Assembly (NCBI GenBank): GCA_020891255.1
Contig: BQFW01000003.1
Coordinates: 248,001 to 312,000 of the forward strand
Direction of reading: 5' to 3'
Length of the DNA: 64,000 nucleotides
Source: Entomortierella parvispora E1425
Lineage: Eukaryota > Fungi > Mortierellomycota
This document shows, in pieces, positions 26,421-59,700 of this stretch (the first letter of the stretch is position 1; every line of letters starts with the position of its first letter). The position numbers were made by a program, and so were the translations under genes. The notes below the pieces were generated by a model that made no database searches, was not told the DNA's origin, and worked only from the letters and a program-made list of their open reading frames with translations.

Positions 26421-28642
26421 TGCCAACATGAAACGCCGTCGACCAAACACGAGAGTCATAGTAGTCAATGGGCAGCCAACTAGGACAACTATCGCACCGA
26501 ATTGACCACAGGTCTCTTTTCAATTGTCCATGCAAAAATCGACCAGAAGAGGCCAATCGTTTTTTTTGTTCATGAGTGGATCTGTTTAATTACCATGGAT
26601 ATTGATCGATCCAATGTTTGACAAATACAACACAGATTCCTTTGATTCTTGAAAACAAATCCTTTTGGCACGAGTGGTCCTTCAGCAAAACAAGGGTTTC
26701 GAAATGTACGCCTGGGCATGGAGGATCTAGTTCGGACTACAAAAGATATTGAAAATACCAGCGGCGAAGAGTCGATGAAACTGTTAGCTTCTATCTCGCA
26801 GCTCCTATTGCGTTTGACCCTTGAGGACAAGAACTAAATACAACTTACTCGCTGAATGGATGAATGGAAAGAAACCACCGGCAGCAAAACAAAAAACTCA
26901 AACTTACTTGCTGAAATTGTAAAACGAAAATACCAGCGGAAGGTATATCCTATTGTTAGTTGGTGTTCGGGACTATTGCATGTTTTTCCTTGAGTGTATG
27001 TTCATGGACTCGACTCCGTATGAGATGGAATAGAACACCGCAAAATGGAAAAAAGAGACATCAGAAATAGTACTCATAGGTCTCATCAATTCCTGCACTG
27101 ATTTGGTCATAGTGTATCCGGTCTTCTTGCTGCAGTGATAGGAATATCATCCTCATTTCTCCTTCAAGATACTGGGGGGGGGCGGGGGAGGGGTCTTTTG
27201 AAAGTGAGAAGACTATCCAACTTGCTCGCTGATAGATTAGAATGAGAGATCCGGATATGATCATGGCATTACTGATGATATCCTTGACAGCCAGTACAAG
27301 ATCCAACTTACAGGCTAATTGAGAGGAGCGGATAGGTGCTCCCTAATCCGTGTGCAGGTCTCGGTTCTCGGTGGCAGTCATGGCAGTCGTGGCTGCAAAA
27401 CTAGGTAATGAATGAAAAGGATAAAAGGATTGAAAGACGAGAGAAAAAAAGAGAGAGGTTGTGTCTGCTTTGTGCGAACAGTTCCTTTCTTGGTTTTTGC
27501 GTGGCCCAAGCTTTGATATCGAGGCACGGACGTGATGCGGGGAAGAAGAACTAGACGCGTGCGTCTGGCAAGAGAAGGACACGACTTTTTCTTTGATTTC
27601 CTCTTCCCTACGCCCTCCCTCTCTTTTCTTTCGTCTTCAGTTTAATTCAGGCAAATGACCTCCTCCTTCTCCTCCCGTGGACAGCTATGAACGAGATCGG
27701 TATCCTGAGGTAGGTCACTGTCAACATAAGATGTGTACATTCTCGCTTGAGTCTCATATCCTCAGCCATAAAGTGCTCCCAAGGACCTCGTCAACTTCGG
27801 TTTCTAGCAAGGCACTGGAATCACAAGCTGGAGAAAGGTGAAGGACATGCTCCTCTAGACTCCTCCATGACATCAATGGCACTGGCGATAAAGACGATGT
27901 CTGAGGATACAACTGGTGTGAAGCAGGCTTCTTCTCTGGCGAAAGATAGGCCCAGAGTTTGCAGCGGGGAAAATCAGTGCGAAAGAAATCTAGGATAAAA
28001 ATAAAGAATAGCTAATAATAAAAAAAGGGGCCTGGGCACAAAAGTTGATCCCCACGTCTGGTGTCTCTCTGCGCACCAAAAAGAGAATCTTGGTCAATGG
28101 CAAACCGATTGCTGCAGAGGAGGACGCGTCTTGCTTCTCTGCCTCGACTGGAGATGAGCATGTCTCTACTGCGTCGCACCAGAGGGTATGATAAAAATAA
28201 GAAAGCAAAGGGACAGGATGTCGCCATGTGCAGCGGGCAAGGTGCGACACAAGGAAGCGAGGCTGTGGAACAACACGTTGACAACACAACACATCAGGGA
28301 AAACAGGAAGAGAGGGAAAAAAGGAGACAACGGCTCCCGGCTGTCCGTCGTCTGTCTCCAACGCCAAGAGATTTGTGGTCAGGGTCCGACTGCGTGGGGA
28401 AGAAAGACGGATCTGCTCCGTCCGAAAAGGAAATAGGCGCAGGTCGACTTTCTCTTTTTTTTTTTTCCTTTCTTCCTTGGCTTGCCTCTTCTCATTCATT
28501 CATTCCTTTGCTCGAGCCATTCTTTCCTTCTTTCCTTCCTTCCCTCCTTCCCTCTCTTTACTCCCTCTCTTGCATTCGACTCTTCATTCAGCCCTACCTC
28601 AACTCAACCTCAACTTAAACAGCCCCCCTTCTTTCTTTCCCT

Positions 28643-50044: not shown

Positions 50045-51071
50045 GTAAGGCAATTGTGTGGACAGTTTTCAACTGGGTGCTTCCTTTGCCAGCAGGCAAC
50101 TCGCTTCATGGAGAACGCCGAGGACAGTAACAAAAGAAACATGTTGCGAGAACCCCATCTCGGCTCCATGACTGGCCAAGGTAGACTGAAAAAAAAAGGT
50201 GGTGAGGAGGAGCAGTGTCAATCCCCACCTCCTTGTGGTGAAGTGCTGCCCCTTCCTTTCTTTTGTCTCGTCCCCTCAAATCATTTTCCCCTAGTCTACG
50301 GTCCTCCCACGGCAAGGATCATCACGGAATACGTCCCCCTCCCGGCTGTACTCCCTGTCGCACCAACCCCACCAACAAGAGTGCGTCCCTCTCCCCTTTT
50401 GACGTCTATTGTCCCTTGCGACATTCTACAGCCGCTTTTCCTTCGATTCTTTTTTCTTTTTTTTTTTTTTTTGCTTGTTCTCTTTTCTATTTTTGGTGAG
50501 AGTCGCGAGTCTGTGTCGAGAGGGTCAGAACATGGTCGAGGATTTTGTTGTGAAGAAAAGGAAAGAATAAAAATAAAGAGGACAAACAGCTATCCGTCGA
50601 ATCTGCAAGAGGAGGCACTTCCAGCCTCATCGTCACAAAAAAGATTTGCTCGGGGCCCATTCGTGATTCTTGCTAAAACTTGACAACTTCAAGTGCTCAC
50701 TGCCCTCACTTCCCCCCGTCGCTGCCCGTGCCAAGGTATCACTCCACTGTAAAATCTTGACGCTTTCAGGACAAGGAACTGCACAAAAACCGACTCCCAA
50801 AACACCTGCAGATCGCATGGAGCCACAGAATCAACGGATCCTTTCAACTAAGGAAAAAAGACACGTCCGTGGCCGTATTGTGTAAGGCAACTGTGCAAAC
50901 AGTTTTCAACCGGACACCTCCTTGCCGCAGGCAACTCGCATTATAGGGGATCCCATAGATAGTTTCAAAAAACTTTTGCGAGAACCCCATCTTGGCTCAA
51001 TGACTGGTCAAGGCAGACCAAAAAAAAAAAAGGAGGGGGGGGGAGAGGAGGAGCAGGGTCAACCCCACCTC
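50045..51071 (+). repeat. Dispersed direct repeat of ~190 bp: 50045-50231 and 50882-51071
   Basis: Shared blocks gtaaggcaa, acagttttcaac, gcaggcaactcgc, ttgcgagaaccccatct, ggctc-atgactgg-caagg-agac, gaggaggagcag and ccccacctc occur in the same order. Confidence 0.85.
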
Positions 51072-51219
51072 GTCAACAAAACTGCCCACAGATGGGTTTT
51101 TGTTCGGCCCCTGGACTGGACCCCCTTTCCCTTGATCCATAAAGATGGTTTGACCCACGACCATTGCCTTTTTTTTCTCATTCGCTTCCTCCCCTCTCCC
51201 TCGCCTTTTCTCACCTAAA

Positions 51220-53654
51220 ATGAAGTTCCAGTACATCCTTATCCTTGCCACTTTCATTGGCTTTGCCGTAGCCGCTCCTGTGTAAGCTGACAAGTTCGAG
51301 TCCAAGTGATGCGTGTTTCTAGATGCAAACTGACAACGGTATCGATTCTAAAATATCATTGTGTACTTTTCTACCTTTTTCTTTTTTTTTCTGGCGCTGT
51401 CAGCCCGTAAGCCCAGTCGACGTCTCGCATTCAATGGCCAAGATGCACCCAGATTGAAAGCTAACGGTATTACATGTCTCTTGCTCGTCCCGTGTCCTTT
51501 CCAATTCCGTCAGCGAGTAAGTTGAGTTTGCCTCTTGCGCTCAAGGACCAAGGTGCACTTTGATCAAAACTGAGGCTAACAGTACTGCATGCCTCTCATT
51601 ATTGGTGTGTCGCTTCCACTCCATCAGCACGTAAGTGGAATCTACGTCTTGCGCTCAAGTGCCAAGATGCGGTCCTTCGAGATTGAAACTAACGGCCCTA
51701 CATGTCTTTCGCTTTTGGTGTGTCGTCTTTTCCAATCTTCTAGCGAGTAAGTCGATCTTGCACCCAATGGCCAAGATGAGGTCTTGCGAGATTGAAACTA
51801 ACAGTGATATTTGTCCCTCGATCTTGGCGTATCCCTTTCCTCTTTATTAGCGCGTAAGTCGGGTCTACGTCTTGCACTCGAAGGCCAAGATGTACTTTCA
51901 ATCACCGTTGAAACTAACAGCACTTCATATCACTCATTCTTGTCGTACCCTCAATACATCTGCCAGTCAGTAAGTGGAGCCTCTTCCTTTCACCCGAGGG
52001 TCAAGATGTCTTCGATCACCATTGAAACTAACAGTACTACATGTCTCTCATTCCTGGCGCACCCTCAATATATCTGCCAGTGTGTAAGTAGAGCCAATGT
52101 CTTTAACTCGTGGGCCAAGATGCAGTTCGACGAGCAATGAAACTAACAACAGTACATGTCTCTCGCTTTTGGCCATGCGCTTTCTAATCTACTAGGAAGT
52201 AAGTCGAGTCTACGTCTTGAATTCAAGTACCAAGATACGTTTTCAATTGACATTGGAACTTACAACATTATCATATGACCACTTTTGATATGCCCCTTCG
52301 AATCTCCCAGCGCGTAGGTGGAATCTTTCTCTTGCGCTCAATGGCAAAGGTGCGATCCAATCGACTCGAAACTAACAGCATCAAATGACTACTTTCGGTT
52401 GTGCTCTTCCTAATCCACCAGGGAGTAAGTCCAGTCTACGCACTTGCACTCAAGGACCAAGATGCTTTTCGATTGAAACTAACAGTTCCACATGACCACT
52501 TTTGGCGTGTCCTTCCGACTACTAGAATGTAAGTGGAGTTTGTCGCCTGCACTCAAGGTCCATGATGCAGTCCGCGACAGTGAAACTAATAGTATTACTA
52601 ATATTGCCTTTGGCGTCTCCCTTCTTAATCCACCAGCCTGTAAGTCAAGTCTACGTCTTGCACTCAGGGGGCCTAAATGCGGTTTGATCGACATTGAGAC
52701 TAATCATATTTAAATGACCACTTTTGATGCTGTCCTTTCCAATCTATCCAGCGGGTAAGCTCAAGTCCTGGTCTGATCTGGGACTCAGGGGCCAAGGAGT
52801 GCGGCCTGATCGACATTGAGACTAACCATATTACATCACCCACTTTTGACATTTCCTTATCGAATATATCAGCCTGTAAGTGGAGTCTGCCTCTTGCACT
52901 CGAGGGCTACAATACAGTACGATCGATCTCGAAACTAACAATACTAAAATGACTACTTTGGGGCTTTGGGGCATATCCTTTCGAATCTACAGTGTGTAAG
53001 TGGAGTCTTCCTTGCACTCAAAGGTTAAACCTCGCCTCGATGGACATTGAAACTAACAGAATCGTACGTCTCCCGCGTTTGCCATTTCCTTTCTAATTCA
53101 ACAGTCAGTAAGTCAAGTCTACGTATTGCGCCCACGAGCCGAGGATGCGGCCCGATCGACATTGAAACTAACAATACTACATGACCCACTTTTGGAATTT
53201 CATTTACGATCCACTAGCGCGTAAGTCGCCTTGCACTCAAGGTCCAGGATTCATTTTGATCAACAATGAAACTAACAGAATCGCATGTCTCCCGCTTTTG
53301 CCATTTCCTTTCTAATAACATAGCGAGTAAGTAGAGTCTACGTCTCGTCCCCAAGAGCCGAGGATGCAGCCCGATCGACATTGAAACTAACAATATTACG
53401 TGACCTACTTTTGACCATTTCCTTCACGATCCACTAGCGTGTAAGTTGCGTCTTTCGCCTTGCACTCAAGGTCCGGGATTCAGTTTGATCAACAATGAAA
53501 TTAACAGCTTCACTTATCTTTCTGTTTCGCCATGTCCTTTCTAACCTACCAGCGTGTAAGTCGAATCTTGCACTCAACAGACAAGATGTGATCCGATCGA
53601 CGTTGAAACTAACAGTACTACATGACTCTGGTTCATAGTGCCGATATTCATTAA
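51220..53654 (+). CDS. Micro-exon gene encoding a 45-aa predicted secreted peptide (MKFQYILILATFIGFAVAAPVPDTDAHVNAEILGLVHADVVADIH); 22 exons, 20 of them 3 nt long
   Basis: Exon 1 is 51220-51281 (signal peptide). The 3-nt exons start at 51404, 51514, 51628, 51744, 51851, 51967, 52081, 52196, 52311, 52422, 52526, 52637, 52752, 52873, 52993, 53105, 53218, 53324, 53438 and 53553, each as YAG|NNN|GTA(A/G)G. The last exon is 53639-53654 (ends in TAA). Total 138 nt, open frame. No RNA evidence is available. Confidence 0.85.
51282..53638 (+). repeat. Tandem array of 21 mutually homologous introns (83-122 bp, mostly 101-118 bp)
   Basis: Unit consensus GTAAGT-(g/c)gagtctacgtcttgcactcaag-gccaagatgc-...-ttGAAACTAAC-a-tactacatg-c-cttttgg-...-YAG, recurring every ~104-121 bp. 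The first intron is the most divergent. Confidence 0.92.
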
Positions 53655-54307
53655 GGAAGTAAGCAGAGTACAAGGTGCAGCCCAAGAACAGGCCATATAA
53701 CGCTGAACCCCCTCGAGATGTCCTTGACAGAAGCTTGTAGCTTGTCCGAAAGAAGATCCGAGCTACTAAACTAACATACCCTCCTTTCTCTTTCCCCCAT
53801 CATCTTCAGTGAGCTGTAAGTTCTGGTTAACTGATATGTGTGGAATCTATGGTTCTCTTTTTTTTTTCTTGCCATTTCATTCTTATGATTGAAGCGGTAC
53901 TGACTCCATTCCATCTGGTGCTCCGTCCTCTTGGTAGTCCTTCGAGCTCGATATCCCGTAGCCGGAGCTATGGCCAATCATCTGAAATCCCAATTCGCCC
54001 AAGACGCCCCATCCTGTTGCAAGGATTTGTTTTCAAGAATCTCAAGTCAAGGACCCTGATTTAGTTGTATACCATCGGATCGAACCCCCCCCTCCTCCTC
54101 CTCCTCCTCCTCCTCCTCCAATGGAATTAAACAGATACATATATCCACAAATCTCCATGGGGGTGCAGCGCCAGAGCTGAAGCACCAATGCCCCCAATTG
54201 CAGTGTTGAACAACCGATTTCATTTGCAGGACTTATTTTTATTTTTATTTTTTATTCAAGCCGGGAACTCATGTTCTTCACAGTATTGCAGTCCTCTTGT
54301 TCAATCC

Positions 54308-56220
54308 TCAAACTGCCAAGGGGGCATCCACATTTCGGATCCGGATCCCGCTCTGCTTCAACGTATCCTTGACAGTCTCCAATGGAACTTCCCTTCTGTG
54401 GAAGATACCAGCGGCCAGCGCCGCCTCCACGCCTGTCTTCTCAAACACCTCGACAAAGTGCTGAGGTGATCCTGCTCCACTCGAGGCAATGACGGGGATT
54501 CGGATCGCGTCGCGCACATCCTGGATCAACGCCAGATCATATCCTTGCTTCATACCATCCTGATCCATCGAGTTGAGCAAGATCTCGCCAGCTCCCAAAG
54601 CCTGGCAAGCAATCACCAACTGCCGCACATCCATGTCTCTGCCCTCGCGTCCTCCACTGACTGTACACTGGTACCAGCAGAACCGCTCTCCGTTGGGTCC
54701 CAATTGAGCTGGCTCGATCACATGGTGAGTGGTGTCCGAGGGCGAGTTCACATAGACCTTCTTGGGATCGACCGAGATCACCACTGCCTGAGATCCATAT
54801 GCATGAGCAATCGTCTCAATAGCACTCGTGCCATCACCCTTGCCTCCCAAGGCGTAGAACTTTTCGGCCGCATAGACAGCATCCGATCCAATAGAGACCT
54901 TGTCAGCTCCGTTCCTGAAGTACTCTCCTGCAACCTCCAAGGCCGGGTGCAACTTGCCATCGGGATCGACCACATCCTTGATACCGCCTCCGATTGTCAA
55001 GGGCACAAAAACAGTCTCGGATGCACGACGCAATACCTCCAGCATGGGCATGTCCAACAAGGGGCAGTTCCTGAATGAGGTAATGTTCAAGAATGTGATT
55101 TCGTCTGCTCCCTCCTCAAAGTACCGTCTTGCCAACTCGACAGGCTTTCCCAGATTGCGGACATCTCCCTTGGAGTTCTCATCCTCACTTTGCTCACGTA
55201 CATCGTACTGGTCTCCCTTGGTCACCACCAAATCTCCTTGATCGTTCGCACGAACATCCAAGCACGCCACAACTCTCTTGGTGAATCCATCTGCTGAGGC
55301 TTCGGGCACAAAAGTTGGGTTGAGAATCGACAATGCTCCTGGGACCAGTCCCTGTGATGGGTTTTGCTGGAGAAGAGCCAGATCAGCCTCAGCGCCCTTG
55401 GCAGCTCCACCGTCCAAGAAAGCCTTCAAAACGTTCACTCCGGCAAATCCTGACTTTTCGGGGTGGAACTGTGTGCAAAAGATGTTGCCTCTGCGAACTG
55501 AAGAGATAAAGACCTGGTCACCATACTGGGTCGAGGTTAAGCACCACTCCTTGGCCTCCACAGATCCCTCCACGAATGGCACTGCAAACGAATGAACAAA
55601 GTAGTAGGCACGGTCGGCTTCCAATCCACAGTCCAGTGCTCTTTGAGGTCCTTGGATCGATCGTGCTGTGTTCCAGCCCATGTGAGGGACAGCCTTCGTC
55701 GTCGATTCAAACAAAGTGACCTTTCCGGGGATGATGCCCAGACCAGGGACAGAAGGACTCTCGTCTGATCCCTCAAAGAGGGTCTGCATGCCCACACAGA
55801 TACCCATGAAGGGCTTGTTGAGAGCCAAGTACTCCTTCAAGGGCTCTGCGTATCCTTTTGTGTGGAGCGACGTCATGGCACTGCCAAAGGCTCCCACTCC
55901 TGGAAAGATGAGTTTCTATTCAATTGCAAAGAGGAACCAAAAGTCAGGAAATCAAGATGGATAACTTTTTTTTTTCATTTCGTGAAATAAATCTCCGAAG
56001 ATCAGCCAGCGTCGAGAGCCAAAAAAAATAAGGGTTCGACGGGATAACAAACAACAAAGAACAGCTTTTTGGAGGCTGCGTGGATCGTTTTGCTTACATC
56101 GGCCTTGAGGATATCGGAGGGGTCCTTGACGTATGTGATGTCGTGGCCAAGCTTCTTGACAGCGTTGACTAAACTACGGACGTTGCCAGCGCCATAGTCG
56201 AGGAGATATGTTCCAGGCAT
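54308..56220 (-). CDS. HIS7: Imidazole glycerol phosphate synthase HisHF (bifunctional), 2 exons
   Basis: LDYGAGNVRSL, PGVGAFG, GICVGMQ, QFHPEKSG, VVACLDVR, PLTIGGGI, EILLNSMDQDG, ALAAGIFHR. Confidence 0.96.
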
Positions 56221-56722: not shown

Positions 56723-59700
56723 TTATACAAAGTACATGTTGTCCAAGATCCCGCTCTACAACATAAACACACGCATGGTCAGTAAAAGTAGCTACATGGA
56801 ACAGATACCAAGTCGAGTAATAGAGCAACGGACTTACCGACGTCTGGAATGTTGGTCCAGATCCACTGGAAGAACTGGCCGAGTCTGAGAGCTCATTCCC
56901 CTGGTAATATCGAGCACGGTACGCCAACAAGTGTGCGTAGTACACAGCAGGCACAATACTGACGGACTTGGGGCAGCGCGAATAGGTGTGGCAAAGCTGA
57001 TAAGTCAATTCCTGAAATCCATCCGATGAAAACTTGTTTTCATCCAAGAGAATGTGGTAGAGGGTTGGTCGAGACGTTCCCTGTATACCACCGTGACTCT
57101 GAAGATCTATAGGTGGATTTGCAAAGGCACCAATATGAGAAAAGGATATATGGATCTCATAAGACTCAGTTCAATGACAACAACTTACAGAAATCAAATT
57201 CGGTCGGATGAGTGATGACAGTGTCAACAATCGTTCCTGCAACGCAATTGCCAGATCGATCGACAGTAGCATCGTTTTGCTGGGAATGACCCTGCTGGAT
57301 AGGGGGACGGCCTTGTTGGAAGGGGGGGCGACTTTGCTGGTAAGGAGGGCGGCCCTGCTGGTAATGAGGACGGCCTTGTTGGTAAGGAGGACGGCCTTGT
57401 TGGTAAGGAGGACGGCCTTGTTGGTAAGAAGGACGGCCTTGCTGAAAGGAAGGACTATATTGCTGCTCTGACCCGGCCTGCTGCTGTTGACCAGGGCTGT
57501 TCTTCGCCGTGGGGAAAAATCGAGCATGGTGGCGCTTTTTGACCACGCAGAAGGTCGTTGGAGGATCATAGTTTTCTAATATTATCCAAAAGGAACGAGC
57601 TCTGTCTTATTAATTTACTTCCAAAGAACAGAATGACACATGACTATGAGCATGCATACCGTTGATCTGATGACATGCTTCCTTGACCGCCTTGAACTCC
57701 TTGTCAAGAATATCAGCATACTGTCCCTCCGAGACGCCATCGCGATAGAACAAGATTCTAGCAGGTAGACTCTTGACTTGGCGTTCGAAAGCTAGCAAGA
57801 GCTGGAGCACAAGATCCTTCAGTCCATCGATCACTTCCTGGCCACCTTCCTGCACTTTGATTCTGCCAGAAAACTGAAATCCAAAGATATCCATGGAAGC
57901 CACCACAGCCACGATAGACGGACGATCCTCCCCACGTGCGGGATGTGTTACATCAGCTCCAAAGATGATGGTTGGCTGCTCAGTCATGAACTTGGAACCA
58001 TTTTTCAAGACTGAGTTGCATCCACCGAGCTATATTGACAGATATTAAAAAACTCTTGTTAGTATATTACGATCTTGCGGGCAATAATGTCAACAAACCA
58101 CGATAATAGTATACCTTCGAGTTTATCTTCAACGTGAGCATGCCACAATAAGCCTTCATCTTGAAGTTGTCCTGCGTAGCTTTTTCGGAGAGCACGCACT
58201 GAGTCATGATACCAGCTCCTGTAGTCTCGCAGTAGGTTTTGAGGTTTGGGTACACGCCGCCATCACCCGGTAGAATAACCAAAATGACTGAAATTTGAAA
58301 ATATTGGTTAGATCAGGTTGTAACATTCTCCTTATCTAACTTGGAGCCAAGGGGCTAGCCTGTGAATCAACTTACGTTGTGGGGGCTTGCGGCAGTGAGT
58401 GGTGATCAAGGAGCGCATGGTGTTCACGCTACCCTCAATATTACCCGCTTGGCCGTACATGATTGGAGGATCATTAATGGGCACAGACATTCCTGAGAAA
58501 AAAAAATGGATCGTCAGCTCAGGTACTGGAGAACATGACCATGCGACAGTCATCATCATATCACTACCTTTCTCTACCAAAGTCTGAGTGAGCACTCGGA
58601 CGAAATTTCTGACTTGGGCTTCAGCAAGGCTCCTATGATGCACCACAATAATCCCCATGTCAAAAGCTGTACGCGTTATCTGTCCGTCGGCAATTGGAGG
58701 CAAGCACTTACGATTCATGGTCGAGAACGAGAATGCCATAGGAAGAAAGAGTTGCACCTTTGTACAGCTTGCCCAGCTAACATTTGCAGAACCGCAGGTA
58801 AGTCTCTGCCTTCAAAATAGCTGATGCAGACATGGATTAATAAAGTGTGTATCAATACCTTCCAGCTGCCCTGAAATGGTTTCTCGGACCTTCCTCCGAA
58901 TCCGATCTCGGGCGCAGACAAGATTCGAGCAGGAATCACCTCCATATCTTTGGAAACCTCCAACTTGAAGCTCTTCAAGTACTCGTCGCGATCATGATCC
59001 AAGAGTGGAAAGAGTTGCTCAATTCTCTTTGCACGATCTGATGGCCTAAGTGTGGTGCCCCTGATCATCTGTGCAGTCTGGTCCGGACCCAACTGAAATG
59101 CTCAAAAAGTAAAACAAATATCAGGGTGTGCAACATTAGAACTGACCACGGGCTCATTGGAACTCGCTTTACCTTCTTCTGGTAACGTCTACCGGGAACG
59201 ACTTCGCAGACCTCGGCAGGGTAGTAAATCATCTTGGAATCCTTGCCCTTCACACCGATACAAGGCAAAAATGGATAGCGAAGTCTCAGAGAGTAGGCGG
59301 CATCATAGTACTGGGGGATGGTGATCGCCTTCTTTGAGCCGTCGTTCAGCTCCTGATCGAAAGTTATGTCCTCTGCCCTCTTCATGCTTATCTCTGAGAT
59401 TTTTCGGACGCGTCTCTTGAAATCAGGACCGCGATGGGAGACAGTGAAGGGAAGACCTTTGAAGTGCCTGTTGAATCTCCTGAGATCGGTTGGACTCAAT
59501 CGATTGAGATCAGCGGGAGTGCGGGCGTTGCGCGCCATCAGGTCCACCATCAGGTGCTCTACTTTTCCTGCTTTGTAAAAGGCCGTACTTGCAATGTCAA
59601 TGTTGGCGTACAGCTTATCCTGCCCTGCTCGAACGGACTGGAATGCTCCATTCCAGCGCTGGACTCCGCCTCCGAGATCCTGTGCGCCCGTAGAATGGTA

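Follow-up and report, generated by a model that had tools for sequence, protein, structure and literature searches.

Sequence analysis of a 64,000-nt window of the genome of the soil fungus Entomortierella parvispora E1425 (Mortierellomycota; assembly GCA_020891255.1, contig BQFW01000003.1, positions 248,001 to 312,000) identified, on the plus strand between window positions 51220 and 53654, a gene that appears to encode a small secreted peptide and in which one intron of about 110 nt splits every codon after the signal exon. The explanation proposed here, including growth of the array by unequal recombination between tandem units of one intron and three exon bases, is given a probability of roughly 0.8 as a whole. 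Twenty of the 21 introns are paralogous, their similarity has an adjacency and dimer structure, one of them is chimeric, blocks of units have been duplicated across a family of related genes, and the intron family is confined to such arrays among the best 150 candidates scored in each genome profile search. The introns are predicted to be spliced and the peptide to be made and secreted.

The first exon encodes a hydrophobic, signal-peptide-like start (the hydrophobic core was judged by eye) and ends in phase 2 at an adjoining GTAAGC donor (51282). The gene contains 21 introns of 83-122 nt and, from 51404-51406 to 53553-53555, 20 consecutive exons with an invariant length of 3 nt, each completing one codon with its first base and opening the following codon with its other two. 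The array sites follow the pattern AG, three bases, GTRRGY (n = 20) at a spacing of 104-121 nt. The YAG at 53636-53638, the first past the branch site of intron 21, was taken as the putative acceptor of this intron; an alternative AAG acceptor at 53653-53655 would give a 21st exon, GAA (53656-53658), before a GTAAGC donor. The scripted spliced model was open through to the TAA at 53652-53654 and predicts, from about 138 nt of coding sequence, a precursor of 45 residues that would give a peptide of 25-27 residues; in the mature part, acidic or histidine residues alternate with small hydrophobic ones up to the end ...ADIH. No long open reading frame (ORF) was present on either strand between 50684 and 54307, and an Rfam scan of 50500-54500 with E up to 1 gave no match, the introns not being hosts of known snoRNAs or other known RNAs.

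Intron paralogy, duplication structure, and coding frame

Intron relatedness was assessed by scoring each intron against a profile of the others, with 100 shuffles per intron as a control in which the donor, branch site, and acceptor were left in place. Introns I2-I21 scored 48-76 bits each compared to no more than 15 bits in the shuffles, including the truncated intron 21, which reached 54 bits and matched positions 1-84 of the profile of this array's own introns (R2). Intron 1 scored 0 bits, did not match R2, and was 43-61% identical to the other introns in pairwise comparisons. Because I2-I21 reached 48-76 bits and intron 1 zero, 20 of the 21 introns are by this measure true paralogues over their whole length, presumably from one ancestral intron. 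A preliminary description of the locus had reported motifs shared along the entire length of the introns, which holds for I2-I21 and fails for intron 1, and the similarity is greater than the splice signals alone produce. Raw pairwise identity was a weak test in this case, as lenient gap scoring lifted the shuffle baseline to 0.60-0.62 compared to a mean of 0.69 for I2-I20, and the profile test was used instead.

The most similar pairs were I17/I19 (86% identity), I6/I7 (81%), I13/I14 (79%), and I16/I18 (77%). A phylogenetic tree (IQ-TREE) grouped I6 with I7 (support 100/99), I17 with I19 (97/95), and I16 with I18 and I20 (85/94). The mean positional distance from an intron to its most similar intron was 2.8 units versus 6.7 when permuted (P = 1e-4), and identity dropped with the distance between introns (r = -0.32). 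A 114-bp period was detected by Tandem Repeats Finder (TRF) at 51871-52164, and the I6/I7 pair would be a recent one-unit duplication. The particular likeness of I6 to I7 and of I17 (53108-53217) to I19 (53327-53437) noted in the preliminary description was borne out, as was its expectation of adjacency and dimer structure in the intron alignment and tree. For I13/I14, singled out in the same way, the identity agreed, but the tree left the pair apart and grouped I13 with I15 (87/77). Head-to-tail units, similarity decaying with distance, higher-order periods, and a chimeric junction unit are thus all present in the array, as in a tandem duplication.

A two-unit event was identified toward the 3' end of the array, where TRF detected a 219-bp period at 53044-53507 (2.1 copies, 84% matches). 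Copy 1 comprises the 3' part of I16, exon 16, I17, exon 17, and the 5' part of I18, and copy 2 comprises the 3' part of I18, exon 18, I19, exon 19, and the 5' part of I20. The block carries two 3-nt exons, in agreement with the earlier suggestion that a dimer of about 220 bp adds two amino acids. Intron 18 was 89% identical to I16 in its 3' part and 65% in its 5' part, and a column-by-column comparison showed it tracking I20 almost base for base as far as the branch-site core and I16 from there to the 3' end, which substantiates the split resemblance (5' half I20, 3' half I16) first described. The switch in type falls inside the conserved branch-site core GAAACTAACAG, the best-conserved segment of the repeat unit, and a crossover in the best-conserved segment is as expected for homologous recombination. 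These data support I18 as the probable chimera expected if an I20-type intron recombined with an I16-type intron in a single unequal crossover, with the arrays misaligned by two units.

The array is proposed to grow by unequal homologous recombination between misaligned units, which is the preferred molecular route, with replication slippage as a possible alternative. Crossover points would lie in the branch-site core as the most conserved intron segment, and each event would copy one, two, or more complete "intron + 3 nt" units as a block, therefore adding the same number of codons and of introns with the reading frame unbroken. The latest event in this gene would be the 219-bp dimer, which would have added two residues, duplicated I17 and two exons, and left I18 chimeric. 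After duplication, the two codon-defining bases of each exon may diverge or be selectively kept different, while the introns and the wobble base stay alike. All 20 array introns (I2-I21) formed one clade (support 98) among 178 introns of 9 arrays, and therefore the expansion or homogenization took place in situ. The original idea that the peptide grew by tandem duplication of intron plus codon units is supported by the I18 chimera and by block duplications, exons included, in the paralogues described below.

The array retains the features of spliceosomal introns. Its donors are GTAAGT (17), GTAAGC (2), and GTAGGT (1), and CAG or TAG makes up most of its acceptors. Of 20 introns here, 18 contain a CTRAY branch motif, as do 164 of 178 across the family, and the median length of the stretch without AG upstream of the acceptor is 44 nt here and 55 nt family-wide compared to 12 in shuffles. 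Units that are now about 60-70% identical have retained donor, branch motif, and acceptor, the signature of functional introns at the sequence level, and the introns vary by insertions and deletions while the exons stay at exactly 3 nt.

Exon and intron divergence were compared for 75 exon pairs in which the intron pairs on both flanks were at least 85% alike. The introns of these pairs showed differences at 6.5% of sites. Among the exons, 12% of pairs were unlike at base 1, which is the wobble position when read from the ATG exon, and bases 2 and 3 were each unlike in 37% of pairs (odds ratio 8.6, Fisher P about 1e-27). Looser pairing led to the same result. The codon-defining bases 2-3 change about six times as often as the flanking introns, although where the introns of an array are very uniform, duplicates are paired ambiguously, and the safe claim is that introns resemble one another much more closely than exons do. 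Two readings can account for this: diversifying selection acts on the peptide, or homogenization of the introns goes along with selection that keeps the residues distinct. Both imply a translated product. Exon base 1 is C in 80% of exons compared to 29-35% at the third codon positions of three neighboring ORFs, and codon bias was rejected as the cause on account of this local usage. The C may be inherited, or may serve splicing or robustness to exon skipping.

The gene family and competing explanations

A pattern of three donors spaced by 3-nt exons matched the genome 48 times versus 3 times in a reversed control, and a looser pattern, the intron profiles, and the 3' motif described below added further arrays. 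At least 13 paralogous arrays were identified including this gene, with 5 to 48 units per array (Table 1). The 12 arrays that were read hold 218 three-base exons, a total from a chain parse that counts 21 exons in this gene by including the alternative GAA exon. A common 62-nt first exon encoding M-K-[I/F]-[Q/E]-...-A-A-P plus two bases, always in phase 2, heads at least 11 of the paralogous arrays, and the family members have a very short terminal exon after the last intron; in four paralogues, K or KK is the predicted C-terminus before the stop. The predicted peptides are otherwise wholly different between members and include a Cys- and Pro-rich peptide with a 10-residue motif present twice, a P-S-G repeat, a Gly/Thr-rich peptide, and an Asp/Leu-alternating peptide.

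The introns of all arrays could be mutually aligned. In the 178-intron tree, those of the array at C8:3.060 Mb formed one clade (74), as did those at C1:2.310 Mb (99), and the C11 and C13 arrays had unit types in common. Block duplications that include the exons were found at C13:1.845 Mb, where a 10-unit (1128 bp) block gives rise to the repeated 10-residue peptide motif, at C8:2.819 Mb, where a 3-unit block occurs three times over, and at C1:2.310 Mb, with duplicated blocks of about 4 units.

On the minus strand of the window (26640-27320) lies a paralogue that is decayed or short. It has four exons of 3 nt (cct at 27314-27312, then cga, caa, and cga) between degenerate introns, one of which has a GCAAGT donor, as well as the family 3' motif at about 26664-26649; there was no recognizable signal-peptide exon upstream. 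This locus was the best non-self match of the array intron profile (27 bits). In the 28-exon array at C8:3058677-3061777 (minus strand), which also has one unit with a GTAAAT donor, the reading frame meets a stop codon assembled from two exons (ATA then ATC) with three units of the array still to come. Its last units either belong to the 3' untranslated region, or part of the array is in decay. At C1:775145-775512 (minus strand), a distinct gene for a secreted, Cys-containing product has a long first exon followed by three or four GGT exons separated by near-identical introns of 120 nt, and appears to be an independent small case of intron plus codon duplication in which glycines were added in phase 0.

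Several observations weigh against a simple account of tandem growth. Outside the supported clades the tree of this array was star-like, with 11 of 16 inner branches unresolved, and only the last few duplication events are legible. Plain duplication with neutral drift misfits the data; because the exons are far more diverged than the introns that surround them, selection on the peptide and/or homogenization of the introns must be added. The 150 candidates scored per search also leave room for weak solitary intron copies elsewhere. Finally, the similarity of neighbors could also result from short-range gene conversion between adjacent introns in an old array of stable unit number, with selection shielding the 3-nt exons. 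Such concerted evolution would suit introns that have diverged far less than the exons beside them (6.5% versus 37%), and also the distinct intron flavor of each array, with within-array identity of up to 0.86 in the C8 array despite diverse exons. It is nevertheless an unlikely substitute for tandem growth, as the I18 mosaic fits one reciprocal out-of-register exchange, the two-unit register is exact across 463 bp with both exons included, the long block duplications in the paralogues copy exons too, and unit number varies from 5 to 48 among paralogues. Tandem growth and conversion are not exclusive and conversion probably contributes.

Alternatively, the locus could be a non-genic satellite, either a 113-bp tandem repeat derived from introns or a defunct gene, with only the appearance of introns and from which no coding mRNA is ever spliced. 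This view draws on the decayed minus-strand copy at about 26.65-27.32 kb of the same window and on the stop that precedes the last three units of the C8:3.060 Mb array. It is improbable for several reasons. Units otherwise about 60-70% identical still have their GT, AG, and branch motif, and the exon is always exactly 3 nt although the introns vary in length. The zone free of AG is four to five times the length seen in shuffles, and in the frame of the ATG exon the wobble base is conserved and the two coding bases vary. Across the paralogues, the signal-peptide exon, K/KK-stop ends, and 3' element are conserved. An introner-like mobile intron inserted repeatedly, once per codon, was the alternative raised in the preliminary description by analogy with Dothideomycetes. 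Many near-copies of one intron in a single genome do have the look of an introner, and introner-like elements are reported for some fungi in the sources consulted (PMC3609843; PMC4457414). However, genome-wide profile searches recovered no copies of the intron family in unrelated genes: all 150 scored matches of the family profile (R1) lay within arrays, and R2 scored its 20 own introns at 52-81 bits, then the decayed window paralogue, with all remaining scored matches in other arrays. In addition, a 457-bp piece of the array matched only the array itself in the 38.9-Mb genome (BLAST-type search). This distribution is what tandem growth predicts for the intron search proposed at the outset. 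The spacing of exactly 3 nt also argues against repeated insertion, as do the multi-unit blocks and the chimeric intron, which indicate units copied along with their exons. RNAalifold found no consensus structure among the introns (0 pairs), and folding z-scores of 12 introns were between -1.73 and +1.42, i.e., ordinary energies. The host belongs to the Mortierellaceae rather than the Dothideomycetes, and in a survey covering thousands of genomes, the only fungal introners were those of Pezizomycotina (PMC9860276). An introner origin is therefore hardly credible for this family, and growth by unequal recombination of tandem units is retained.

Related architectures and wider significance

A signal-peptide-type first exon followed by a frame-symmetric run of microexons is also the layout of the micro-exon genes (MEGs) of the animal Schistosoma (DeMarco et al., 2010, Genome Res 20:1112). 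MEG exons are reportedly about 6-36 nt long. Their products are likewise said to be secreted, with the signal peptide in the first exon and a frame-symmetric run of tiny exons, and to vary through exon skipping; the differences are exons of 6-36 nt rather than 3 nt and an animal rather than a fungal host. Tandem near-identical introns are not known to be a defining feature of MEGs.

A closer fungal parallel is provided by the nank (NACHT-ankyrin) NLR genes of Tuber melanosporum, for which citing papers describe codon-sized 3-bp microexons that are alternatively spliced (Iotti et al., 2012, Fungal Biol 116:261, as described in PMC4986451; PMC10197012), a design presented there as a diversification device acting via alternative splicing. 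As far as these descriptions go, both systems have multiple consecutive one-codon exons in a fungal gene family; the truffle genes encode intracellular NLR receptors in an ascomycete host, whereas short secreted peptides with a signal exon are predicted here in Mortierellomycota. The present gene consists of the signal-peptide exon, the array, and a 16-nt terminal exon and does not qualify as a NACHT-ankyrin NLR. Apart from the truffle nank genes, a literature search for 3-nt exon arrays in fungi or Mortierella found nothing relevant. The kind of architecture, a rare one, is already known in print from truffle, and the present case is set apart by the phylum, the secreted-peptide family with a shared signal exon, the legible duplication history, and the contrast in exon and intron divergence.

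Intron gain by tandem genomic duplication has been modeled by Rogers, with the potato RdRp gene as an example, as outlined in PMC4974935. In both cases, tandem duplication yields new introns without a mobile element. In the Rogers model, as outlined there, the duplication affects a stretch of exon that includes AGGT, and some of what had been exon turns into intron, while the unit here is a complete pre-existing intron plus 3 exon bases that was amplified many times, each event adding both introns and codons. Sequence-similar spliceosomal introns within one genome are likewise a feature of the introner-like elements of Dothideomycetes and other fungi (PMC3609843; PMC4457414) and of the intron families and sister stwintrons of Hypoxylaceae (PMC8469720; PMC9024468). 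Those introns are reported to be scattered over hundreds of unrelated genes, to exceed regular introns in length, and to have stable structures by prediction, in contrast to the strictly tandem, ordinary-length introns without special structure found here in one gene family.

The architecture was also sought in metagenomes, where the matches listed were mostly (GTAA)n-type simple repeats and included at least three contigs with the same architecture and introns unrelated to those of this genome; the R1 profile found no homologue among the 66 metagenome loci searched. The AT-rich contig WNGF01082377.1 has a phase-1 ATG exon followed by 18 three-base exons and an exon in the correct frame, and the next downstream exon matches a Pfam protein-kinase domain. 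From the DNA alone, WNGF01149738.1 from the same assembly, also AT-rich, has at least four three-base exons, apparently before a similar kinase N-terminal region. In both contigs, the N-terminal part of the gene is encoded in 3-nt exons between paralogous introns of about 90-115 nt, and the kinase type presumably resembles the expanded kinases of arbuscular mycorrhizal fungi. The whole of the 1209-bp contig Ga0213864_10142092 is taken up by ten repeats with a length of about 130 bp, and every repeat joins a complete intron (GTAAGT ... TACTAAC ... AACAG) to a 3-nt exon that varies by unit (CCT, CGG, GTG, CTT, CTG, GTG, CGA, CCT, CTC, and CCC). Because metagenome contigs, kinase genes among them, have the same architecture with unrelated introns, the one-codon-per-exon design is suggested to arise repeatedly, in other genes and organisms.

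A broader reading, put forward tentatively and with more doubt than confidence, is that these loci form a Mortierellaceae "codon-cassette" gene family in which the one-codon-per-exon design serves as an evolvability device for combinatorial secreted peptides under diversifying selection. On this reading, unequal crossover between paralogous introns would add or remove residues in frame. The near-invariant C at exon base 1 would let each exon encode its own residue whichever exon comes next, and therefore any pattern of exon skipping would give a valid, stop-free peptide, with one gene yielding a combinatorial set. The excess of change at the two coding bases, compared to the introns and the wobble base, would reflect diversifying selection on secreted peptides used against other microbes.

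The origin of introns and changes in the length of short peptides are usually hard to catch in the act, and here the intermediates are still legible as a chimeric junction intron, blocks of 1, 2, 3, and 10 units, and arrays of 5 to 48 units. One recombination mechanism would create introns and codons together and could never cause a frameshift. With conserved introns set against hypervariable exon bases, the question of whether diversification is selected for becomes testable, as proposed for the truffle NLR genes and schistosome MEGs. Gene callers and repeat maskers will take such loci for 113-bp satellites, and fungal proteomes may therefore lack a class of secreted peptides. With full-size introns around exons of only 3 nt, such genes also offer a natural test of how neighboring spliceosomes act with almost no exon between them.

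The 3' element, feature coordinates, and neighboring sequences

A conserved element of about 100 nt follows the array gene, comprising CGAAATCC plus the core AAGGATTTGTTT(T)CAA. The core had 15 exact matches in the genome (this one and 14 elsewhere) compared to 0 in the control. Eleven core matches lie 3' of arrays in the same orientation, 300-500 nt downstream (10 intact arrays and the decayed window copy), and the element is solitary at C2:3127795 and C15:2669768. A coding reading of the element was rejected; since its frames are not conserved between paralogues, it is probably non-coding. An exact match of 19 nt to the core was found at C4:1096346-1096361 (minus strand) inside the exon of a DEAD-box helicase (Pfam DEAD), which we take to be HAS1-like, with dissimilar flanks. 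As the match is too long for easy coincidence, one idea is a shared binding site for a small RNA or a protein. The positions of all features are given in Table 1.

Table 1. Features of the array gene in window coordinates, followed by the arrays of the family in the genome.
Feature	Position	Strand	Description and basis
Exon 1	51220..51281	+	62 nt: ATG, 20 codons plus 2 bases; read from sequence
Intron 1	51282..51403	+	122 nt; outside the detectable repeated intron family
Array	51404..53555	+	Twenty 3-nt exons interleaved with the full-length paralogous introns I2-I20 (19 introns of 101-118 nt)
I6, exon TCA, and I7	51854..52080	+	81% identity; support 100/99; TRF period 114
I13, exon CGG, and I14	52640..52872	+	Neighboring pair, 79% identity; pairing absent from tree
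Two-unit (219-bp) tandem duplication	53044..53507	+	TRF period, I17/I19 86%, I18 mosaic
Intron 18, chimeric junction intron	53221..53323	+	5' part I20-type, 3' part I16-type
Intron 21	53556..53638	+	Truncated paralogue, 83 nt; ends at first YAG after branch site
Terminal coding exon	53639..53654	+	16 nt; stop TAA 53652-53654; from translated spliced model
Family 3' element	53960..54075	+	Core AAGGATTTGTTTTCAA at 54021-54036; elements aligned
Array, this gene	C3:299 kb		20 three-base exons (21 in chain parse)
Array	C1:2.289 Mb		10 three-base exons
Array	C1:2.310 Mb		16 three-base exons
Array	C5:207 kb		12 three-base exons
Array	C8:2.819 Mb		17 three-base exons
Array	C8:3.060 Mb		28 three-base exons
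Array	C11:1.530 Mb		15 three-base exons
Array	C13:253 kb		5 three-base exons
Array	C13:810 kb		27 three-base exons
Array	C13:853 kb		8 three-base exons
Array	C13:917 kb		11 three-base exons
Array	C13:1.845 Mb		48 three-base exons
Array	C15:2.454 Mb		Diverged member, exons of 3-9 nt

The gene on the opposite strand 650 nt downstream of the array gene is HIS7 (Pfam). Its closest named relatives are all Mortierellaceae at 85-88% identity, with Entomortierella chlamydospora the nearest, and HIS7 on one ENA contig is 94% identical. Further along the window, at 57290-57455, TRF detected a tandem repeat with periods of 21/42/63 bp and about 81-85% matches.

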